DNA from: Epithemia pelagica | Taxonomy: Eukaryota > Protista > Bacillariophyta | DNA length: 64,000 nt | NCBI GenBank assembly: GCA_946965045.2 | Contig: OX337239.1 | Span: 2,914,001 to 2,978,000 of the forward strand | Direction: 5' to 3' | Part shown: positions 15,600 through 31,693 of the stretch, one piece after another | Position numbering within the stretch: the first letter of the stretch is position 1 | Layout: the number at the start of each line of letters is the position of its first letter | Translations under genes and position numbers: made by a program | The notes under the pieces: generated by a model | The model's database searches: none | Told to the model about the DNA's origin: nothing | Seen by the model: the letters and a program-made list of their open reading frames with translations, nothing else

Positions 15600-16495
15600 A
15601 TTCGTCGCCGTATTCCCGGAATACAACAACGAGGACCCAGATGCGCAATACTACACCCTCTACCTGCGCAAGACCCCTGACACACACTTGCTCACCACCA
15701 ACACCATCCGACAGTTCACCGACTTCCCGAACAACATCCTTCTCCCCACCCTGGCGGCCGTGGCCGCGACACCTCCGAGACAATCGACAAACAACCACAA
15801 ACCAGCAACTCCGACTTCTTCTAGCCACACCAACCGACTCGTAGCATTTACCAACCGTCTTCTCAGGCGAAAACACAACAACCTCGACGAAACACCAGCC
15901 GAGACAGAGGACAACGGACCCGAGACTCCGGACAGGCACAACCATCCAAGCAACCAGCCAAACAAACGGAGTGCAGCCGCCATGCAACCAACAGAGGAAG
16001 AGGACAACGACCCATACGACGACGGCACAGATTGGACAACAGTGGCAGCGACAGCCCACCACATCCAAAACCAAAACAATGAGGTCGACGACCAAAAACC
16101 AGCAGCCAAACGGAACCAATTCGCCCCGTTGGCCGAACAACAAGACGACCAAACAGCTAACGACGACATGATGGACACGGAAGAGTCCGACGACCACTCG
16201 CGTGCCCTCATTGGAAGCGACGACAACGGAGATAACTACGAACAAGACGACCATGAGTTTTCAGCCACCACCATGCAAGAAATCGAACTAATCTTCAAAT
16301 ATGTGGCAAACAACAATCCCTCACGCATCGACGAAATGCGCGAATTTCTAGAGAATACAAAGTCGTTCACGAACGACACCGACGCGCAGGATGCTTGGCG
16401 CTTTGCCCAGTCTTTAGTCCAGACCGGCAACACCTACATCGCCGACTCGCGCACCGGCCATGTGGTCCCGCATGACAAATGGGCCAAAGGGCCAA

Positions 16496-20388: not shown

Positions 20389-20468
20389 GAGTCCCACTTT
20401 ACCATAGACAATAACATACTAAAAAGACTAAAGGTATATGACAACATCGAGACCCAATCGTCCAGTTA

Positions 20469-21490
20469 TGGGCTATCGGTGGGCGTGATAGCGCAAACAA
20501 ACCCCTGCTCGATTTGGCTCGTTTTTGTTGGAACGAGATTTTCAACCGTAACTCGATGTACTGCCGAAGCTCCAATATGGTAGTTCTACAGTTCATACTT
20601 GAAGGGCTTTTACTTTAGCGTCTACCTTCGTGAAACCAACTATCATAACTATCGTAGGTGCCATGGTTATCGCAACATAGTCGTCCATCGATGAGGATTT
20701 TCATCTCTCGCGACACGAACCACAATCGATCCTCATCGTCAGTTTCCGCTACTCGTCTCATTCAATCTTGATTCTCTGCCCCTCCTTTTTTGTAGCATTT
20801 TAGTTTAGGAACACTTGAGCGTAACGAGGTATCAGATTGACCGTAGGCGCCATGGTCATTGAGAATGGGCCATCCATTGATGGAGGCATTTTTCTCGATG
20901 TAGCACGTAGCACACAACATTTCGAGACCGAAGGACGTTGCTACTCGTCTCGTTCAATATTGACTCGCTTGCCTTCCTACTTTGTAGCATTTTAGTTTAG
21001 AACCTACTTGAGCGTACCCAAGTCTCAGATTGACCGTAGGCGCCATGGTCATTGAGAATGGGCCATCCATTGATGGAGGCATTTTTCTCGATGTAGCACG
21101 TAGCACACAACATTTCGAGACCGAAGGACGTTGCTACTCGTCTCGTTCAATATTGACTCGCTTGCCTTCCTACTTTGTAGCATTTTTAGTTTAGAACCTA
21201 CTTGAGCGTACCCAAGTCTCAGATTGACCGTAGGCGCCATGGTCATTGAGAATGGGCCATCCATTGATGGAGGCATTTTTCTCGATGTAGCACGTAGCAC
21301 ACAACATTTCGAGACCGAAGGACGTTGCTACTCGTCTCGTTCAAAATGGACTCATTGCCCCTCCTACTTTGTAGCATTTTAGTTTAGGACCTACCTGAGT
21401 GTACCCAGGTCTCAGATTGACCGTAGGCGCCATGGTCATTGAGAATGGGCCATCCATTGATGGAGGCATTTTTCTCGATGTAGCACAAAG
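20469..21490 (+). repeat. Left TIR including ~3.8 copies of a 193-bp tandem unit
   Basis: Starts TGGGCTATCGGTGGGCGTGATAGC; CATGGTCATTGAGAATGGGC recurs at 20851, 21044, 21238 and 21431. Confidence 0.9.
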
Positions 21491-21642
21491 CACACGAGAT
21501 TGGGCAAGCTTCAAATCAATTTTTAAGTGTCGTCTGAAGATGTCGGAGACAGGGGACGATTGAGACGAGAAATGGAAGTGGGGAGGTCATGGATTACAAC
21601 AACAGACGAAAGTCTATCACGCAAGCATAAACTTATAGTTTT

Positions 21643-24404
21643 TTATTTTAGAAGAAGTGCGCCACGAACTTTCTTTGGAGATTTATAGTGGACATGCTGA
21701 CTGTGCCGGAAATATTTTGCGAGACGATCTTCTGAGTTGTAGTAGGGTGGTAACTGGTACTCGTTTTTGGGAAGATATGGATGAATGGTTTGATCACGCC
21801 CTTGATACATGTAGAAATGGGCACGTGGATTGCCTTGGGCACTGGTCAAGAAGCCTCCGGCGTGAACAGTATCGCCTCGCATCATGAGGAACGTTCCATA
21901 GGGAACGTCGACCACCTCACCCAACTGATGCCTATTCTTCTTGTGGTCCTTGCGGTGCCGCCACAATTCTAAAGTCATTCCGTCCTCCGTCAGGGGCACA
22001 AAAACAGCAAATGGGACACGTTCTCGGAACGGCACTTTCTTTCGTCCCTTTCCACGAGTCTTGACGTTGCCTTGGGGTGTCCCTTTCTGTTCAGTCGAAC
22101 CCTGTTCCTCGTCCGGACTTGGCGTGACCACATCCCATTTGAAATCCAGATGTGGCTCTTGCACCTTTTCAAATGTGGTCTTGAGGAGCGACAGGTGGAT
22201 CTGGATACCTTCAGCAAAGGAGTCATCCTCTGCGTACTCCATGTCCACAAGGCCTTGAGCAAGAGTCTTCTTGAACGTTGCCACAATTTCAGCTACCCGC
22301 TTCTTCCCCCAGGGTGTGAATTCGTCATGTGCCACTAATCCTTCACCGTCAAACATGCGCATTTGGATTTGTGGGGTGTATTGTTGCACACCCCGCATTC
22401 TCTTCGAAATCTTGTCGTCCCCATGCTTCTCCGTTCCGAGAGACCAGAAAGCTCTGTCGGAGCGACCAAAAAACGTCCTCGTGGATCACCCTCATAATTG
22501 ATCAACAAGTGGCCATAGTTTTTATTCAGTTCTTTTGCTTTCTCTGCCGGATTTGGTTCCTCCTCAACCGCTTCCACCTGGTGAGAGTCCTCCGGACTGG
22601 GGTTTTGATTGAGTATCGGGGCGTCATATGGAATGCTTGGTTGTGGCTGAACCTGCCCGTATCCTTCATAAGGGAGCTGCCCCTGAGCCACCAAGACATG
22701 GGGCCGATGATGCTCATCATAGAAATGCCCGGGCGTGTAGTGGGAATGTGGAGGATGATGGTATGGTGGACTGTGGTACTGAGGATGATGGTGTGGTTGA
22801 AGGTGGTGTATTTGCGGAGAATTGTAGTGGTGCTGTTGAGTGGCAACATCATGAGGAACAGCAGCGGCGGGAACAGGATGGTGCAGTTGAAGGTCGTGCG
22901 GTTGGTAGTGCTGTTGAATGGCAACATCAGGAGCAGCAGCGGCGGGAACAGGATGGTGCAGTTGAAGGTCGTGCGGTTGGTAGTGCTGTTGAGTGGCAAC
23001 ATCATGAGGAACAGCAGCAGCGGGAACAGGATGGTGCAGTTAAAGGTCGTGCGGTTGGTAGTGCTGTTGAATGGCAGCATCAGGAGCAGCAGCGGCGGGA
23101 ACAGGATGGTGCAGTTGAAGGTCGTGCGGTTGGTAGTGCTGTTGAATGGCAACATCAGGAGCAGGAGCATTACCACCAGAACCACCCATCTTCATCTTCT
23201 TCACCTTCTTCGGAGAATCATCCTGGCTGGATCGACCTCGCTTCTTCTGCACATCCTCATCAGGCTCCTCACCGCCTTCCTTTGAGGCTGCGATCGTCTT
23301 GGTGTCCGAGCTAAGGTTGTAGAATAAAAACAGCTCGTCCCCCTCCGCGATCTCCTTGATCACACGAACTAGCAGATTCTTGTCGATACGCACGTTGTAG
23401 TCCTTGTGTGCTTCGTCAGGTCCTTCTTCTGTATCGTAGAGGTGATACTGGGGATCATTCATCAAATGAAACCCCATGAAAAAGAAATCCTCGTTGTCGG
23501 CTTGAACGATGCGTTCTCCGTGCTCTCCAAACTGAATTGCGTACTCGGTCCGACCGACGGTCCGAGAGGTGATATCCAACCCTGCATACACACCAATCAC
23601 CTCACCTACTTTGTGCTCTTGTACAGAAAAAAGACCAAACCCGGGGCCTTCTTTTCCCTCTTCAGCCTTGAGGCCCGACTTCTTGACTGTGAAGATGTGT
23701 TTTGTCCCCAGCATAATCTTGAAGATCGGATCATTCTTGAGGGAGAAGCTGAACTGTCGAAACTTGAGGCACGAGTTGTTTCGAGTTTGCTTGGTTGGGA
23801 TCCCAATCCCAACGGACTTGGGCACAACTTCCCCAACTTCCAGTCCGTAGTCATTTTTCTTGGGGGCCGTATTAGAGTTCTTGATGCCTGTGCCTGATTT
23901 GCGAATGGGCGCATCTGTCACCGAAAATGTGACGCCAATCTTCTTTGCCACAAACACTCCGTATGCGTTGATCAGCACAGTGCCATCCTTGATCGAAGTG
24001 GACAGAAACTTCAGTCCTCGGATGAAATTGTCCCATGGATCCCGTCCATAGGCCTTGACTTTCTTTACTGCAGCGACAGCCTCCGCATAATCCTTTTTCC
24101 GTTGCTCGCTGAGGCGCTGTTTCAAAGCCGACGCCGAGTCCGTGTATGCATTGTCGTCCTTTAGCTTGCCGCGACGACTGTCTGCATGCTTTTTCTCGTT
24201 GACTTTATGGAGGTCTTCGTCTGTAAGAAACCGATGGCTTGCTCTCGCTTCTTCTGTTGCTGCCATTGTTGCTTCGTCTGCTGCTGCCATAGGTGATGGT
24301 GAATGTGGCTCCGACTCCGCCTCCGAGGCAGCAACTGCAACATGAGCAAGCGCCTTAAGACGCGATTCAGATTGACTTTGTGTTTTCATTGTTCTCCTCT
24401 CCAT
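21643..24404 (-). pseudogene. SET-domain plus His/Gln repeat linker plus 2OG-Fe(II) dioxygenase fusion gene (~920 codons; one nonsense codon, one homopolymer frameshift)
   Basis: SET motifs GFGLF...GEVIGVYAG...FHLMND...IAEGDELFLFYN (~23316-23665). DSBH motifs PHLDF...FAVFVPL...RGDTVHAGG...GNPRAH (~21800-22160). ORFs 23040..24404 and 22335..22694 are in the same frame, separated by a CAA>TAA change in one repeat copy. One extra base in the A6 run at 22468-22473 joins the oxygenase frame. Confidence 0.75.
22830..23163. repeat. Coding tandem repeat, alternating 75/78-bp units (~4.4 copies)
   Basis: GGGAACAGG at 22869, 22944, 23022 and 23097; the minus strand encodes QQHYQPHDLQLHHPVPAAAAPDVAI-like units. 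Confidence 0.9.
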
Positions 24405-24842
24405 CTTTTTGTAGAGTAGGGGTTTCTCAGAGAGTCTTGGGTTTTCGAGCGTTTCTCAGACAGAGAGCGTTCGTCATTGCCTGGTCTGCAGACCACTTGA
24501 CAAAAAAACAAATCAGACCACACTTGGAAAAAATCTTTCGATTCAACGGGAATACGGTTAAAACGTCAAATTTTGTTACATATTTCATTATGTTTAGAAC
24601 ATTCTTGTCGTTTAATGAAGGCGGGCGGGCATGCGGAACACGCGCTTTTGTAGCGACTGCTCCACAAAAACTACATCTTCCCTCCAACACCGTTCCACAG
24701 TTCATTCAACAATCAACCATGTGCTTGCTTGCAAGTCGAAAAGATGCTTTTGACCGCTAATGGAGATTGGACACACAAACAGCAATTCTCAATAACCTCT
24801 TAGAAACTTGAGAAGACCAAAACGCACGAGAACGATACAGCA

Positions 24843-27800
24843 ATGGAACCACCGCCGCCGAGGCCTAAGTCATGTGGTTTGGGGATTGGATCGAGATGTT
24901 TCATGAGGCGTGGAGACATCCCATGCATTATTGTTGAAGCAGTCGAATTTCATAAGTGGATGGTCGCTGGAGTGGACGAAAGAGGAAATCTAACAGAGCT
25001 AAGAAATGAACGCTCTTCCCCACAGCTTCGATTCCCCAAGAAAGATGAAGGTTTTCCTGGACAACCAGATCCAGTTGCAGCAACCGGACCTCGACCTACG
25101 ATCTCAACAACAACCACAGTATCAAATACTCCAGTTCCAGCCAAAACCGCAGCAAGGACAATGACAACGGCATCGAGGACAGCAACATCCACGTCAATGC
25201 CAACGGCAACCACGACAACGACAACGAGCGCGACAACAAGCGCGACAACGAGCGCGACAACGAGCGCAACGAGCGCGACAACGAGCGCAACAACGACAAC
25301 GAACACCCCAGTCGAGACGACAGCAAGGCCGACGGCAGCGGCATCGACAGCAGGAACAACCACACCAATGCAATCGGTAATGACAACGACTGCTGCACCA
25401 ACGACCACGGCAACGACCACTGCAACAACCACTGCAACGACCGCAGCAACGACAACGACTTCAGAGGCTCCTCGCACTGTTGGTGGAGTGATATCAACAG
25501 ATGTAAGCGACGATGAAGAAATTGAAGTTTTGGCACAAGCGGCGATCCTGGACAACGCTCAAGGTCAAGATGCACCTCCGAACAATCAGAACAACCCACC
25601 AACGACCAGGCAAAATGATGATGAAGATAGTGACAACGAACATGAAGATCAGGATGAAGATGCAGCTGCCGATGAAGAACTCGAAGAAGATGTACCCGTG
25701 GAACTTGTCTATGATGACGAGGATGACAGAGCTGAACAAGAACAAGCACAAGCACGCCAATTGGCTTTCGGGGCTTTGGTTGAAAGAGACGAAGATTGTC
25801 ACAGGCATAAAAATGGAGCAATACAAGCTTACCAAAGACCATCTTATTGAAAGCAACTGGACCGTAGTCGTCAAGCCTCCCAAGAAAAAAGGAATCGACA
25901 TTGGAGATCGAGTTCACAAGAATGGCAACAATGCTCAATGGGGAACAGTTGTCGACGGGAAGAAGAATCCAGTGGCAAAAGGAAACCTATGGACTGTGCT
26001 TTTTGACGGAGAGAGTGAGCCAACGACCGATTTAACGGGTCAACAGCTACGAAGGAAAGAGGACAAAAGAAGATTTGAGTGGAAGATAGTCGAGGATTCA
26101 TCGCCGGATCATCCAGTGTCGGACTATGAGAAGAATGCAATCGTTGGCTACAACTTCGGCAAAAGGATGAGTAAAAGTGAAATAAGCCACGAGAATGAAA
26201 AATACTCCTTTCCATTTCTTGACTTGTTGATGCACTTCTGGCCAGGTAAGTCAGCACTACTCTTTGTTTCTACATCGCAGAAGTTCAACAGTCTCACTTT
26301 CTTGCAATCGGCCTCTGTACAGGGAACTGGCAAAATCAGTTGAGAGTCCTTAATCTTAGTTTAGATCGATTGAATCAAAAGCGTGATAAAAAGAAGAAAA
26401 TTCGAATGGTTACGGAAGGCGAGTGGTGGAAAGTTTGGGGGATTATTGTCGCGGCAAGTCCCCTTGGTGTAGGAGGAAAGGCTCTTTTCCAGGATCCTAG
26501 CACTCGTCGGTTATCACCACATGTAAATCTTGGAACGAAAGGCGAAAACATCATGACAGAGAGTAGGTTCAACGACATTAAGACGCATCTCTATCATGCC
26601 TTCAGGGGGACGGATCCGAATGACAAATGGAATGAAATCCGTCCCCTGACTGATGGGTTCAATGAGAACCGCCGACTAATAATTGCGTCGTCCGTGGTTC
26701 AAGTGCTTGACGAGTCGATGAGTGCGTTTCGACCACGAACGACCAAGCAATCTTTGTTGCCGCATATCTCATTTATTGCCCGCAAGCCCAAACCTCTTGG
26801 GACGGAGTTCAAGGTAAGCTAACACCAGACAGACAATGTTTTGAAGACTTAATGTGTCTGACCTTACTACCTTATTTCATTCACAGGTGGTCGCCGACAC
26901 CACGACAGGGTGTCTGACCCAACTTGAAATCCAAGAAGGAAGAGTCCCAATGCGGCGTAAGAAGTTTATCGCGAAGTCTGGTCCATCGGGCGGCTGCACA
27001 CTGCGGCTTGTCGAAGGTTCACAATACAGTGGACAGCTGTCAAGCGCACGCCACGAAGCTGGAAAGGCCTCCAAGCGCTACCTGTATTTAGGCGACTCCT
27101 GGTTTGGAAGTGTCCAGGTCGCTGAATGCCTCAAGTGTTCGTGGAGGGAACAGGACGATCGACGCAATCGCACTTCCTTTCCGTTCTACGTGGACAAAGA
27201 GAAAGGGCTGAACACGGATGGACATGAGTTCATTGGTGCTGTGAAGACAGCGCACTCATGGTTTCCCAAGAAACAGATCGAGAAGCAGATGAAGTCTTTT
27301 CCATCCGGAGCCTACCTTGTCATGGAGTGTACTGCCCCTGTCACTGGAGTGAAGCTCGTAGCGGTTGGGTACAAGTACAATACAAGGAAGGTTCTTCTCT
27401 TTGTCATGACCAAAGATGCCGGGCATACTCAACCGGGCGCACCATACATTGCTCGCTTCACAGATGTGTTTGGAAATATCAAGCAGCGGAGAGTCGAGCG
27501 TCCCGACTGTATTTCAAAATACTTTCGGCACGCCAATGCAATTGACCGGCACAATCACATCCGTCAGGGTCTTCTACGCCTCGAAGAACTATGGTTAACT
27601 AAAAATCCGTGGTTTCGGATTGTGACGACAGTCTTCGGTATGACGGTGGTTGATTGTTATCTTGCACTGCGTTTTCACATGCAAGTGGAACCTTTCCTGA
27701 ATACCTCAATCCACGACTTTGCGGATATTCTGGCTTATGACTTAATCAACAATCCATATTCCAAACGCAGTTCAGTTGAACGAAGAGCGGGTGTGCTTGA

Positions 27801-28200
27801 AAGCTTGCCAGTGACAAACAACCTTTCGGTGTGTACGGATGCCTCCGTAACTGTGCCATCCAGTGTTGGCCATACCTGTTCAAGCAGTATATCACCCGCG
27901 TCCGTATTTTCTGAGCTTACAATTGATTCGGTCGTTTGTCACAGCGTTGTTGAACAGGACAACGTTTCTTCATCAGACCAAAGAGGCATGAAGCGTAAAT
28001 GTGTTATTTGTAAGAATGACACGCGAACCATGTGTGGCCATCCACAATGCCGCATGTTCACCAAGACTTGGCGCTCAATAACCTACGTGGGAACACCAGT
28101 GTGCAAACCATCTGTGAGCATTCGATATGGGAAACAATGAACTTGTATCGAGCAGCACGCCATGAACTTTGCTGCGGCGAAAGGAGGAAATGCGACTTAA
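24843..28200 (+). pseudogene. piggyBac-like DDD transposase with a long N-terminal extension, two introns and a Cys-rich C-terminus
   Basis: Introns 26246-26322 and 26814-26886 (GTAAG...CAG) give continuous ...HFWPGNWQNQL... and ...GTEFK-VVAD.... Catalytic-like motifs VLDESM, GDSWFGSV, AIDRHN; C-terminal CVIC...CGHPQC...C..H. There is a +1 frameshift in the A5 run at 25809-25813 and a TGA at 28138 before TCIEQH. Confidence 0.82.
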
Positions 28201-28315
28201 TGAAACTTCTGTGTGCACAAGAACTACACTCATTCTACATGTTTGCGCCTCTCTACATATTATGAAATTAGGAAACCACCATGAATAAGAATACTAACTA
28301 TCATTTGTTACCCGC

Positions 28316-28888
28316 TTACGTGATTTTAACACTTTCCTGGTTGGGCCACGTCTCCGTTGCTTTGTCATAGAGCGACATGAATGCATTCATCCCAGTAAGA
28401 CTCATTCGCACAGTAATGATCATGGGTCCCATTGTCACCTTGGTATCCAAGGAGTGAGAGGTCTCAATGGTGAGTTCTCCTTTGACAAGGGACCCATTTT
28501 TGGAACGGAACTTCTTGGAGCGAATTTTGTTGTGAACCGATCCGACTGGGATGACGATGTCAGGCATCGAATCGTCCTTCTTGTCACGGCCAAACGCGCA
28601 AATTGATAGCATTCCACCGTTGGTACCATACCTGGAGCGCTGTAAAAGAATCACGCCTCGATCCACAACAAGTGTCCCCTTTTCTCCTTTCTCCCCGAGA
28701 GTGGCGTCTTGAAGGTGTACGTTCACGACCGCTTCACCGTAGATGGTTAAGCGGCTTCCTTGGAGCTCGATGTTGCTCCCCGTATCTTGTACGAGGTGAA
28801 AGCCGTTAGGAAGGAGAATCCGATTGCGCGATTCATTCTCGTGTTCGGACATTGTACTTCGATCCGTCCTAAGCATAGAGAGAATCAA
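28316..28888 (-). CDS. Hypothetical protein (190 aa), cargo inside the TIR element
   Basis: Uninterrupted ORF of globular, beta-rich composition; no motif recognised. Confidence 0.5.
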   Translation of the reverse strand: MILSMLRTDRSTMSEHENESRNRILLPNGFHLVQDTGSNIELQGSRLTIYGEAVVNVHLQDATLGEKGEKGTLVVDRGVILLQRSRYGTNGGMLSICAFGRDKKDDSMPDIVIPVGSVHNKIRSKKFRSKNGSLVKGELTIETSHSLDTKVTMGPMIITVRMSLTGMNAFMSLYDKATETWPNQESVKIT

Positions 28889-29354
28889 TGAGTCAAGGTT
28901 ATTGCCACCATTGTAAGCAATGATTTAGATGCCGCGGAACCACTTACTTCTACGCTCGTTTTGATTTGCAAACAAAAGCTCTTTCCTCAGGTGAGCACTT
29001 CATTCAGGTGGCCTATCGATTCTCTCCTCTCCTTCGGAAAAGCTCTTACGTCGTAAAATCGATTTCTCAGACGACATGTAGTAAACTTCATTTGATTTGG
29101 GGGAACGGTTGGGGACTTCCTACTATTGCCACTCGGGAGCAATTACGAAAGTGTGACAAGTTACTTAAGAAAATTTTCTTCCGTTGAGCGTTGAGCCGCA
29201 AGCCGGCTTCCCATACGAGATCCGATTTTATGGTGAGACGTCACATCAATCAAACATCAACGAGAGACAGAGCCGACAGCGACCTTCATAAAACGGCGTC
29301 AACGAGAAACACATCAAGAACAACTGCAACTACAACAACAAAAGCAACAACACA

Positions 29355-29753
29355 ATGTCACTCTATATCGACAAGCGCCGTGTTAGTGCGCGCCTTCAAA
29401 ACCGCACACACACAAGTGTTGTTCGAACCAGTGTGTCAAAATCTGCCGTGCGCCCAACTGAACAAGGTGCCCTCAAGAAAACCAAAATCAAGGCAGAGAC
29501 AGCAACCATTGGAAAGGCAGAATTGCTCTCGGAAGGATTGGATCAAGAATGTGGGGACAAAACCGTAGTTGTTCTTGGAACCGTTGAAGAATCAATCACC
29601 AAGATTCGCGACAATTTAGAGGAAGAAGGATTGAATGGTGGAGACAAGACTCCAGTACGCCACCTGAAAATCAAGTTTGCCGACGACCTTAGCCCAGTCA
29701 ACGAGGAGATCGAAAAGCCTGCATCACGTTTCTCAATAAATCTCGATGCGTAG
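29355..29753 (+). CDS. Hypothetical protein (132 aa), cargo inside the TIR element
   Basis: ATG-initiated ORF preceded by a CAA-rich leader; no motif recognised. Confidence 0.4.
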   Translation: MSLYIDKRRVSARLQNRTHTSVVRTSVSKSAVRPTEQGALKKTKIKAETATIGKAELLSEGLDQECGDKTVVVLGTVEESITKIRDNLEEEGLNGGDKTPVRHLKIKFADDLSPVNEEIEKPASRFSINLDA

Positions 29754-30023
29754 TGCTCAGACTGTATCCTCCCGTGGAACTGCTGTTGATAGCGATCTTT
29801 CTTTCGACTTTGCCGAGACCCAACAAGATGACTGCGAGATTCTTTACGACAACTACATGCAGTCCTAAACAACGTTGAACTAGATATAAATCAAAATAGC
29901 ATTGACTATTCTTCAACTTCCTTGAATCATCACTCAGAAGTCATAGAAACTTACGGATTCAAAGGGCAAACTACCAAATGGAAACACCACTTCCGTTGAT
30001 GGTCGCTACTAGGATAATAAACA

Positions 30024-30796
30024 CCATGGCACCTACGGTCAATCTGATACCTGGGTACTCTCAAGTAGGTCCTAAACTAAAATGCTACAAAGTAGGAGGG
30101 GCAGCGAGTCCATATGGAACGAGACGAGTAGCAACGTCCTTCGGTCTCGAAATGTTGTGTGCTACGTGCTACATCGGGAAAAATGCCTCCATCAATGGAT
30201 GGCACCTTCTCAATGACCATGGCACCTACGGTCAATCTGATACCTGGGTACTCTCAAGTAGGTTCTAAACTAAAATGCTACAAAGTAGGAAGGCAAGCGA
30301 AACAATATGGAACGAGACGAGTAGCAATGTCCTTCGGTCTCGAAATGTTGTGTGCTACGTGCTACATCGAGAAAAATGCCTCCATCAATGGATGGCCCAT
30401 TCTCAATGACCATGGCGCCTACGGTCAATCTGATACCTCGTTACGCTCAAGTAGGTCCTAAACTAAAATGCTACAAAAAAGGAGGGGCAGAGAATCAAGA
30501 TTGAACGAGACGAGTAGCGAAACTGACGATGAGGATCGATTGTGGTTCGTGTCGCGAGAGATGAAAATCCTCATCGATGGACGACTATTTTGCGATAACC
30601 ATGGCACCTACGATAGTTATGATAGTTGGTTTCACGAAGGTAGACCCTAAAGTAAAAGCCCTTCAAGTATGAACTGTAGAACTACCATATTGGAGCTTCG
30701 GCAGTACATCGAGTTACGGATGAAAATCTCGTTCCAACAAAAACGAGCCAAATTGAGCAGGGGTTTGTTTGCGCTATCACGCCCACCGATAGCCCA
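30024..30796 (-). repeat. Right TIR including ~2.8 copies of the 193-bp unit
   Basis: CATGGC(A/G)CCTACGGTCAATC at 30025, 30218 and 30411; ends ...CACCGATAGCCCA. Confidence 0.9.
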
Positions 30797-31693
30797 TATG
30801 ACCTGAAAGTGCTCTTTCTTACACTACGATAGACATATCGTAGGCACCATTTGATGGTAGGGCACGTAGTGGTCGACTTATAGTACCATCAATGTAGCGG
30901 CCAAAGGGCAATCTAGCGGCCATTACGTGGACAAAAAAAAATGACCCTACAATGGTGAGTTAGAACTCGATAACCATGGCCGCTATAGCAAAAGTGGTCC
31001 GCAGGGGCCGAGAGCTTTGTTTGAAGAAGACGTCGCTCGATATTGGGGCATGGGCGTCCTATATTGAGTGAGTTACGCTAGATGTCCATCATGGTCATTT
31101 GGCCGCTATTTTCGAGGTTTTGGCCGCCTCACCCGGCGCGGCACTACAGTAGCGCCGCCACCACTGCGTGAGTACGAGACCGTTCTGCCTCATTCATCTC
31201 AATGACATCTCAATGAACAAAGTAAGGTCTCAGTTATCGTCTCTCATGCTTTTAGAGAGTGCAAGAACAATGTCATCCATACCATCCAATAACTTAGATG
31301 ATGAAGCTATGAGGTCCTCTGGATGTGTTGTCATAGACAATGCTCGCTCCTAGTTGCTGGCTGTCTAGGGTTAGGGTTATTGCTTCGCCGTACAAAACCA
31401 CGGAGAGATTTTAGACCCTGTTTTAGACATTTTATACAGTCTACGAGTACTTTTAGATTTATTTTAGACCCGAAATATTTTAGACTGTCTAAACGGTCAC
31501 CCTGAATCGTCCCCTATCTCTAGCCGCGGGTTGACTCCCTATCTCACTCCCATCATTGTTTCACTTTGAGATCATTCAGTCTCCTGAAACTCACTGGGCG
31601 TAGAGCTGACTGGGCTTGAATCTGAAGGCTCTTTGGGCCGATCAGTACGAACTGTGTCTGCGATCCTCTAAAAGTCATATTTAAGTCCGAACG

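Follow-up and report, generated by a model that had tools for sequence, protein, structure and literature searches.

The window analysed here is a stretch of 64,000 nucleotides (nt) from the diatom Epithemia pelagica (contig OX337239.1, positions 2,914,001 to 2,978,000 of the forward strand); positions given below are those of the window unless another sequence is named. On its minus strand, at 21643..24404, lies a gene that joins a SET domain, a low-complexity linker and a 2-oxoglutarate (2OG)/Fe(II) dioxygenase domain, and that is pseudogenised at this locus; its ATG (24402-24404) and its stop codon (21643-21645) were recognised by frame analysis and by comparison with sister copies. A multi-copy DNA transposon of piggyBac type carries the gene as cargo, and one copy of this transposon occupies positions 20467-31143. 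A preliminary description of the locus, made from the sequence alone, had recognised the fusion, its motifs and the first of two lesions, and these parts of it stand; it had mistaken the second lesion and had overlooked the transposon in which the gene, here a dead copy, resides. Its interpretation is supported in part.

Two minus-strand frames cover the gene. The first opens with the ATG at 24404 (MERRTMK...) and closes with a TAA at 23040-23042, beyond which the same frame is open to 22338; the second extends from about 22482 to the stop codon at 21643-21645 and carries the oxygenase motifs PHLD, TVHAGG and NPRAH. Compared with an intact open reading frame (ORF) of 921 amino acids (aa) in a sister copy (L007:10001-12766), the gene in the window is 98-99% identical. 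When the DNA of the window is aligned with that of L007 and of a further sister copy, L004, only two differences break the ORF, namely the TAA and a 19-nt deletion; all others are point changes. The premature stop (23040..23042, minus strand) falls in the linker, which contains a 75/153-nt coding tandem repeat of 4.4 units (22830..23168, minus strand; Tandem Repeats Finder). Where the window has this TAA, the other units of the repeat and the sister copies read CAA (Gln), the change being C>T on the coding strand at 23042; frame analysis and sister copies thus bear out the earlier account of this codon.

The second lesion had been described as a single-nucleotide insertion or deletion in a run of six A residues (22468-22473). 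The window and two sisters do not differ in that run, and the sister protein reads RGRFLVAPTELLGLLRDVWSLGTEKH through it (A6/T6, according to strand), so that the correct frame runs on. The real lesion lies 20 nt downstream: a frameshifting deletion of 19 nt at 22448..22449 (minus strand), evident from the alignment with L007 and L004 and from 19 extra bases in read contigs X1-X3. Across the deletion site the sister protein reads APTELLGLLRDVWSLG. The deletion removes LGLLRD and one further base from an N-terminal helix of the oxygenase domain, modelled at a predicted local distance difference test score (pLDDT) of >90; the oxygenase would therefore be damaged even without the frameshift. Introns bridging the ORF pieces were considered and rejected, given the continuous single ORF in the sisters.

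The read contigs bear on whether the lesions are real. The 19 bases are an insertion relative to the window in contigs from three public runs of the organism, at a depth of about 450-1160 (about 490, versus about 55-70 for single-copy variants), and none of the window's private single-nucleotide variants is seen in the contigs shown. These observations could be taken to mean that the window copy is intact and that both the TAA and the 19-nt gap are errors of assembly or sequencing. The same contigs, however, carry the sister alleles at 21710, 21716, 22034 and 22253 and so represent the collapsed majority of about eight copies, not the window locus; they break within the tandem repeat that contains 23042. 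A clean loss of 19 nt is, moreover, atypical of read error, and other damage to the element fits a copy in decay: its left end is truncated, 22 nt have been inserted and 8 nt deleted. We therefore give little credence to error as the source of the lesions and conclude that the window copy is a dead relic, recently inactivated by a nonsense codon in the linker and a frameshifting deletion in the oxygenase. The read contigs also hold, at single-copy depth, a variant that skips window positions 22447-23129 (681 nt).

Homologues of both halves of the protein were found in one public assembly only (ENA ERZ21939226), in which ORFs had been called prokaryote-style. Two of the copies are uninterrupted. 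P0177 (L007) belongs to the window's subfamily and encodes 921 aa, in agreement with the size of about 920 aa previously estimated for the repaired protein; P0008 (L006) encodes 967 aa and belongs to a second subfamily (subfamily B), with about 50% aa identity to that of the window. The 90% cluster of P0008 contains at least nine further full-length members of 948-970 aa. Among broken copies, L004 retains the same frame with a single stop (CGA>TGA), and in L003 a single frame covers the SET domain, the linker and the beginning of the oxygenase; the sites at which L001, L003, L004 and the window copy are broken are all different. Intact sister ORFs together with differing break sites mean that the ancestral, and still existing, gene is one intron-free ORF comprising SET domain, linker and oxygenase, of about 921-926 codons in the window's subfamily.

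The ORF pieces themselves suggest another reading, in which SET domain and oxygenase belong to two separate genes, or to one gene split by introns: ORF callers list two or three pieces in the window, L001, L003 and L004. Against this stand the stop-free single ORFs of 921-970 aa in the intact sisters and the different break site of each broken copy; an intron is unnecessary. The reading has practically no chance of being correct and is refuted at the level of DNA. The preliminary description had named sibling copies as the place to look for two separate genes; the siblings instead show an uninterrupted gene with one ORF, and the single SET-linker-oxygenase protein that it had reconstructed exists intact as P0177, as P0008 and as the further full-length members of the P0008 cluster. 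Two other copies depart from this architecture. In L005:7773-8735, a divergent piggyBac-type subfamily with 65-70% nt identity, the SET half is kept; in L002:7227-8672 a SET fragment and an oxygenase lie about 370 nt apart and the linker has been lost.

The SET core occupies 23316..23642 (minus strand) and contains GFGLF (the GxG motif, 23628-23642), HLMND (23454-23468) and ELFLFY (23319-23336); these three motifs and the three of the oxygenase, all quoted in the preliminary description, are present. The sister P0008 matches the Pfam SET family (PF00856) with 26.7 bits (cut-off 22.4), and seven of eight relatives match it (best E 8e-7); three relatives match the PR domain of PRDM2 as well. GFGLF, with the AdoMet-binding GxG, and GDELFLFY, with the C-terminal ELxF/Y-Y motif that includes the catalytic Tyr, are invariant among the relatives; their aligned counterparts in MECOM and EZH2 are the segments GAGLG and GEEL. 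Profile searches of the PDB with the SET half return mostly SET/PR proteins (MECOM, EZH2, MLL1, PRDM), with weak E-values and with the GxG and GDELFLFY segments aligned; with the SET core as query, the top matches are designed Kelch-like repeat proteins and there is no residue-level alignment of the HLMND segment. In a Foldseek search with a weak AlphaFold2 (AF2) model of the SET half, the top 50 matches are all SET/PR domains (best vSET, E 1.1e-3), and by language-model features (ESM Atlas) the SET half scores 0.96 to SET clusters. The domain is minimal, and the Cys-rich pre- and post-SET regions are absent. The SET-like nature first proposed for the N-terminal half is thus upheld by Pfam in the relatives, by Atlas features and, as a weak pointer, by Foldseek, and we hold with good confidence that this half is a minimal, divergent SET-like domain of PR/viral-SET type, with putative catalysis only.

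Two further segments belong to the protein. A conserved module (23703..24236, minus strand) precedes the SET core, beginning with HRFLTDED; it is about 48% identical in aa between the subfamilies, belongs to no known family and is mostly helical in AF2 models of moderate to low confidence. The linker (22554..23315, minus strand), delimited from the translation, comprises about 250-280 aa of low complexity, first acidic/basic and then rich in His, Pro and Gln. It is present in subfamily B in diverged form, with 39.6% identity over 212 aligned codons and lengths of 278 versus 281 aa.

The 2OG/Fe(II) dioxygenase domain, a double-stranded beta-helix, spans 21646..22553 (minus strand) and lies in two frames in the window copy owing to the deletion. 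The window retains the HxD motif as PHLD (22144-22155), the distal His in TVHAGG (21853-21870) and the Arg in NPRAH (21817-21831). In an alignment of 44 sequences the invariant positions comprise Q..H.D, two Pro, a Trp, H.G and a further His: H141, D143 and H237, the predicted metal triad, never vary. Nearly invariant are R250, the predicted basic residue for the 2OG C5 carboxylate, which lies 13 residues past the distal His, and an R.D that precedes this His. A profile segment of the form ...RgDvvHAGG...GnpR... aligns with the distal-His segment of FtmOx1, including the Arg (E 0.015). In P0177 (L007:10001-12766), the sole intact ORF of the window's subfamily, QGN replaces the nearly invariant RGD before the distal His, through two G>A changes; P0008 and the 948-970 aa members of its cluster retain RGD.

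The fold was examined with an AF2 model of a sister domain (P0007:215-523; pLDDT 86.5, predicted TM-score 0.86). Foldseek returned 367 matches at E<=1e-3, of which the top 50 are all 2OG/Fe(II) oxygenases; among them are FtmOx1, SnoN, AndA, AusE, KanJ, OkaE, DAOCS and P4H (E about 1e-6, probability 1.0). VIA-align gave Z scores of 11.5-12.0 to OkaE, KanJ, AsqJ, AndA and FtmOx1 over about 200 aligned residues, and of about 11 to prolyl hydroxylases, and a shape search of the ESM Atlas led to PhyH, 2OG-FeII_Oxy_3/5 and HalD clusters. The top 50 matches of Foldseek and of VIA contain no structure of the JmjC, TET/JBP or AlkB families, and Pfam gives no match to these families either. Curated sequence libraries hold no counterpart: Pfam has no family at E<=1 for the oxygenase piece in the window and none at E<=0.001 for 54 members of the family, and no PHROG or NCBIfam model matches members of the family. 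The PhyH profile (PF05721) does not match either, and the resemblance to PhyH is structural only. A search of the PDB with the oxygenase as a single sequence yielded only a chance match. The model, the structural matches and the conserved columns agree with the metal- and 2OG-binding residues assigned in the preliminary description, and also with its wording 'PhyH-like rather than JmjC', the nearest solved structures being of PhyH type. As modelled, the domain is a bona fide double-stranded beta-helix of the 2OG/Fe(II) type, structurally nearest to PhyH-type enzymes, of an uncurated sequence family and with predicted activity.

The oxygenase family extends well beyond the transposon. An exhaustive profile search of 1.84 billion representatives recovered 332 clusters at E<=1e-3, 107 of them at E<=1e-10, and relatives include an Epithemia protein (KAL7564762.1), an MMETSP transcript and many marine metagenome proteins. 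Four relatives (P0012, P0014, P0016 and P0036) have as neighbours the host genes PP2C, DnaJ, PGK, WD40 and MutS, and no transposase was present near any of the four in the contexts examined. Only one of the 54 oxygenase relatives contains a SET domain; the fusion is lineage-specific, and the oxygenase was probably captured from a host gene family. One relative, P0036 (L013:10001-11572), bears an N-terminal Med26/TFIIS-N domain, a fusion that hints at a possible nuclear, transcription-linked role for the family. P0036 and P0014 (L009:8001-9212), from a metagenome scaffold and from Epithemia, both adjoin a PP2C gene on the opposite strand.

The carrier of the fusion is defined by comparison of copies. 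Window positions 20467-31143 share 98% identity with L004 and L007 over 9.6-9.8 kb. Divergent to the fusion, on the plus strand at 24843..28140, lies a piggyBac-type transposase gene split over four ORFs, of which 26340-26819 matches PF13843 (DDE_Tnp_1_7; E 1.9e-7, 31.2 bits against a cut-off of 22.4); matching ORFs in L004, L005 and L007 belong to the same family. The element is bounded by inverted ends of about 1 kb or longer, to which complete copies add an outer segment of 348 nt at both ends. The right terminal inverted repeat of the window copy (30023..31143) is complete and ends in ...GGCGCGGCA at 31143, followed by the flank CTAC (31144-31147). The left one (20467..21501), made up of a 280-nt unit and 193-nt subterminal tandem repeats, is missing its outer 348 nt or so. 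With its left end truncated, the window copy is probably immobile. The segment absent from the window can be seen at L007:1894-2241 and L004:741-1072.

In two sisters that are complete copies the 4-bp flanks are identical at both ends, being CTAG in L007 (1893-1896 and 16216-16219) and CTAT in L004 (740-743 and 12902-12905). These flanks rule out the canonical TTAA duplication, and the carrier is a multi-copy DNA transposon of piggyBac type with a piggyBac-like, non-TTAA duplication of 4 bp. Two length changes set the window copy apart from both sisters: 22 nt have been inserted at 25246, where the transposase gene encodes its Thr-rich N-terminal region, and 8 nt are deleted near 29739.

Subfamily B has a different companion. 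There the fusion lies downstream of an ORF of 985 aa (L006:6686-9640; also L003:2510-5464 and L001:2552-5548), which has no tblastn match in the window and no Pfam match and is unrelated to the piggyBac transposase. By language-model features this ORF resembles DDE_3 (IS630/Tc1-like) transposases, with its best cluster in diatoms. Direct repeats of 620 nt, 82% identical, bracket the subfamily-B unit (L006:4913-5532 and 15716-16316), and the homology of L003 to L006 stops exactly at the right-hand repeat; the repeats may be ends of the element or may stem from a nested insertion.

The fusion could be a neutral passenger, picked up by the element and of no benefit to it: many copies are broken, the L005 subfamily is without a detected oxygenase and the L002 copy without a linker. 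Rates of substitution argue otherwise. Ratios of nonsynonymous to synonymous substitution (dN/dS), computed by the method of Nei and Gojobori, are 0.41/1.38 (about 0.29) for the SET module between subfamilies and 0.49/2.5 for the oxygenase, where dS is saturated; comparisons with two further lineages gave 0.31/1.13 and 0.34/0.82, and the ratio for the oxygenase is about 0.19-0.41. Values of 0.2-0.4 for both domains imply that both have been kept by selection along active lineages and indicate a functional protein. The architecture has, in addition, survived an aa divergence of about 50% and persists next to two transposase-like genes that are unrelated to each other. A neutral passenger is accordingly improbable.

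Individual copies differ from one another by 0.3-0.4%. Among substitutions specific to one copy (window 21502-30022, compared with L004 and L007), C>T and G>A together account for 45 of 84, with 31 of these 45 at CpG. Such a bias is the deamination signature of methylated cytosine, from which it appears that the host probably methylates, and silences, the elements.

The best explanation overall, and one that we consider very likely, is that the locus holds an inactivated copy of an intron-free SET-oxygenase cargo gene of a piggyBac-type transposon. Several observations weigh against it. No RNA run contains the stretch, and no fusion was found beyond the source organism among 5.8 billion proteins, within the length limits of the search. 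P0177 may be enzymatically impaired or dead, to judge from its QGN, and no oxygenase was detected downstream of the SET half in L005. Others concern the SET domain: the window copy matches PF00856 with 17.7-18.7 bits, under the cut-off of 22.4; HLMND, invariant in the relatives, has Asn-Asp where canonical SET domains have an Asn-His pair; and the AF2 model of the SET half, built from an alignment of eight sequences, is poor (pLDDT 48).

As to what the intact protein does, we put forward, tentatively, protein hydroxylation or another protein oxidation coupled to SET methylation, a function that is possible if still short of probable. Active elements would make the fusion protein, the target of which may be chromatin or another nuclear protein. 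Methylation of a lysine would fall to the SET domain. The oxygenase, acting on that target or on one next to it, would either hydroxylate it or strip a mark from it by oxidation, and the outcome would benefit the element, for instance as a defence against silencing by the host.

The preliminary description had suggested coupled methylation and demethylation or hydroxylation. Coupling of methylation with demethylation is conjecture, and demethylation is made no likelier by our data than hydroxylation of a protein or another substrate. In its strict form the fusion would be a true writer plus eraser, with the oxygenase acting as a methyl-lysine demethylase of the mark written by the SET domain, or of a host silencing mark (H3K9, H3K27), and so rewriting the chromatin of the element. 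The two domains are conserved together under purifying selection, SET-JmjC fusions are known for JMJD2/KDM4 in some lineages (PMC2938197), and the CpG-deamination signature means that the host probably silences the elements. The nearest structures are nevertheless small-molecule oxygenases of PhyH type and prolyl hydroxylases; JmjC and AlkB demethylases are lacking from the top 50, the Pfam JmjC family gives no match, and hydroxylation and demethylation are indistinguishable from fold alone. A true writer plus eraser is, on this balance, unlikely.

It is also conceivable that nucleic acid is the substrate, the oxygenase oxidising 5-methylcytosine or another base as the TET/JBP cargo of fungal transposons does, with the SET domain contributing a separate activity. 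TET/JBP dioxygenases recur as transposon cargo (PMC12730594), and CpG deamination in the element suggests cytosine methylation. The top 50 structures, however, include no TET/JBP or AlkB enzyme, Pfam yields no match to those families, and the TFIIS-N/Med26 fusion among the host relatives points to protein partners; we hold a nucleic-acid substrate to be highly improbable. A broader proposal would cover both subfamilies: two unrelated cut-and-paste lineages would carry a bifunctional chromatin rewriter, in which the SET domain writes a lysine methyl mark and an oxygenase that is neither JmjC nor TET, from an undescribed nuclear family of the host, removes or converts a host silencing mark. This we regard as rather unlikely; if true, the transposons would encode an anti-silencing enzyme of a biochemically new type.

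Irrespective of the reaction, two features of the cargo gene are of general interest. The oxygenase family, 332 clusters from marine protists that lie outside curated libraries, may include an unrecognised nuclear protein-modifying enzyme. Since intact natural copies of the fusion exist, its biochemistry can be tested directly.

Set against characterised enzymes, the oxygenase is like the PhyH-type proteins FtmOx1, AsqJ, KanJ, OkaE, SnoN and AndA in its fold (Z 11-12 over about 200 residues). It is unlike them in sequence, with 9-16% identity and no match to PF05721; PhyH-type enzymes act on small molecules, and PHD2 and P4H are nearly as close (Z about 11). SETMAR is a SET domain fused to a mariner transposase. 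The fusion described here differs in that SET is joined to cargo rather than to the transposase, and in that the gene still resides in a mobile element and has not been domesticated. SET is also fused to JmjC in some JMJD2/KDM4 architectures (PMC2938197). The likeness to our fusion lies in the partner of the SET domain, which in JMJD2/KDM4 is an oxygenase from the same broad class of fold and in SETMAR a transposon-derived protein; JMJD2/KDM4 differ in that the present oxygenase is not JmjC.

Few transposons carry chromatin enzymes of their own, and three cases are close enough to compare. The HarbingerS and MuDR elements of Phytophthora have accessory SET genes (Kojima & Jurka 2014, as cited in PMC12730594). 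As there, a cut-and-paste transposon of a stramenopile has a SET gene beside its transposase; the carrier here is instead of piggyBac type (with a DDE_3-like ORF in the second subfamily) and SET is fused to a 2OG/Fe(II) oxygenase. Several lineages of fungal DNA transposons carry TET/JBP dioxygenases, which are thought to counter silencing (PMC12730594). Both they and the present elements are DNA transposons of unrelated types bearing a 2OG/Fe(II) dioxygenase, but the oxygenases belong to different branches of the superfamily, with no match in sequence and none among the top 50 structures. In the Plavaka elements of red algae, PAG2 combines an N6-adenine methylase with SET, and PAG3 a ParB-like domain with a 2OG oxygenase whose best HHpred match is 2OPW_A (bioRxiv 10.1101/2025.02.11.637652). 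The likeness is that a SET domain and a 2OG oxygenase occur on one transposon. PAG2 and PAG3, by contrast, are separate genes with other partner domains on an element of Plavaka/CACTA type, whereas here there is one fused ORF, on transposons of other types. A link to the PAG3 oxygenase was considered and is unsupported, the four relatives with known contexts (P0012, P0014, P0016 and P0036) lying among host genes.

A search of the literature found no paper on SET fused to this oxygenase. The known cases hold SET genes or 2OG oxygenases separately; new here are the union of SET with a 2OG oxygenase other than JmjC in a single polypeptide, an oxygenase family that is uncurated, and two unrelated transposase types alongside. 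That the fusion is under selection beside two unrelated transposase-type genes argues that both activities work together for the element.

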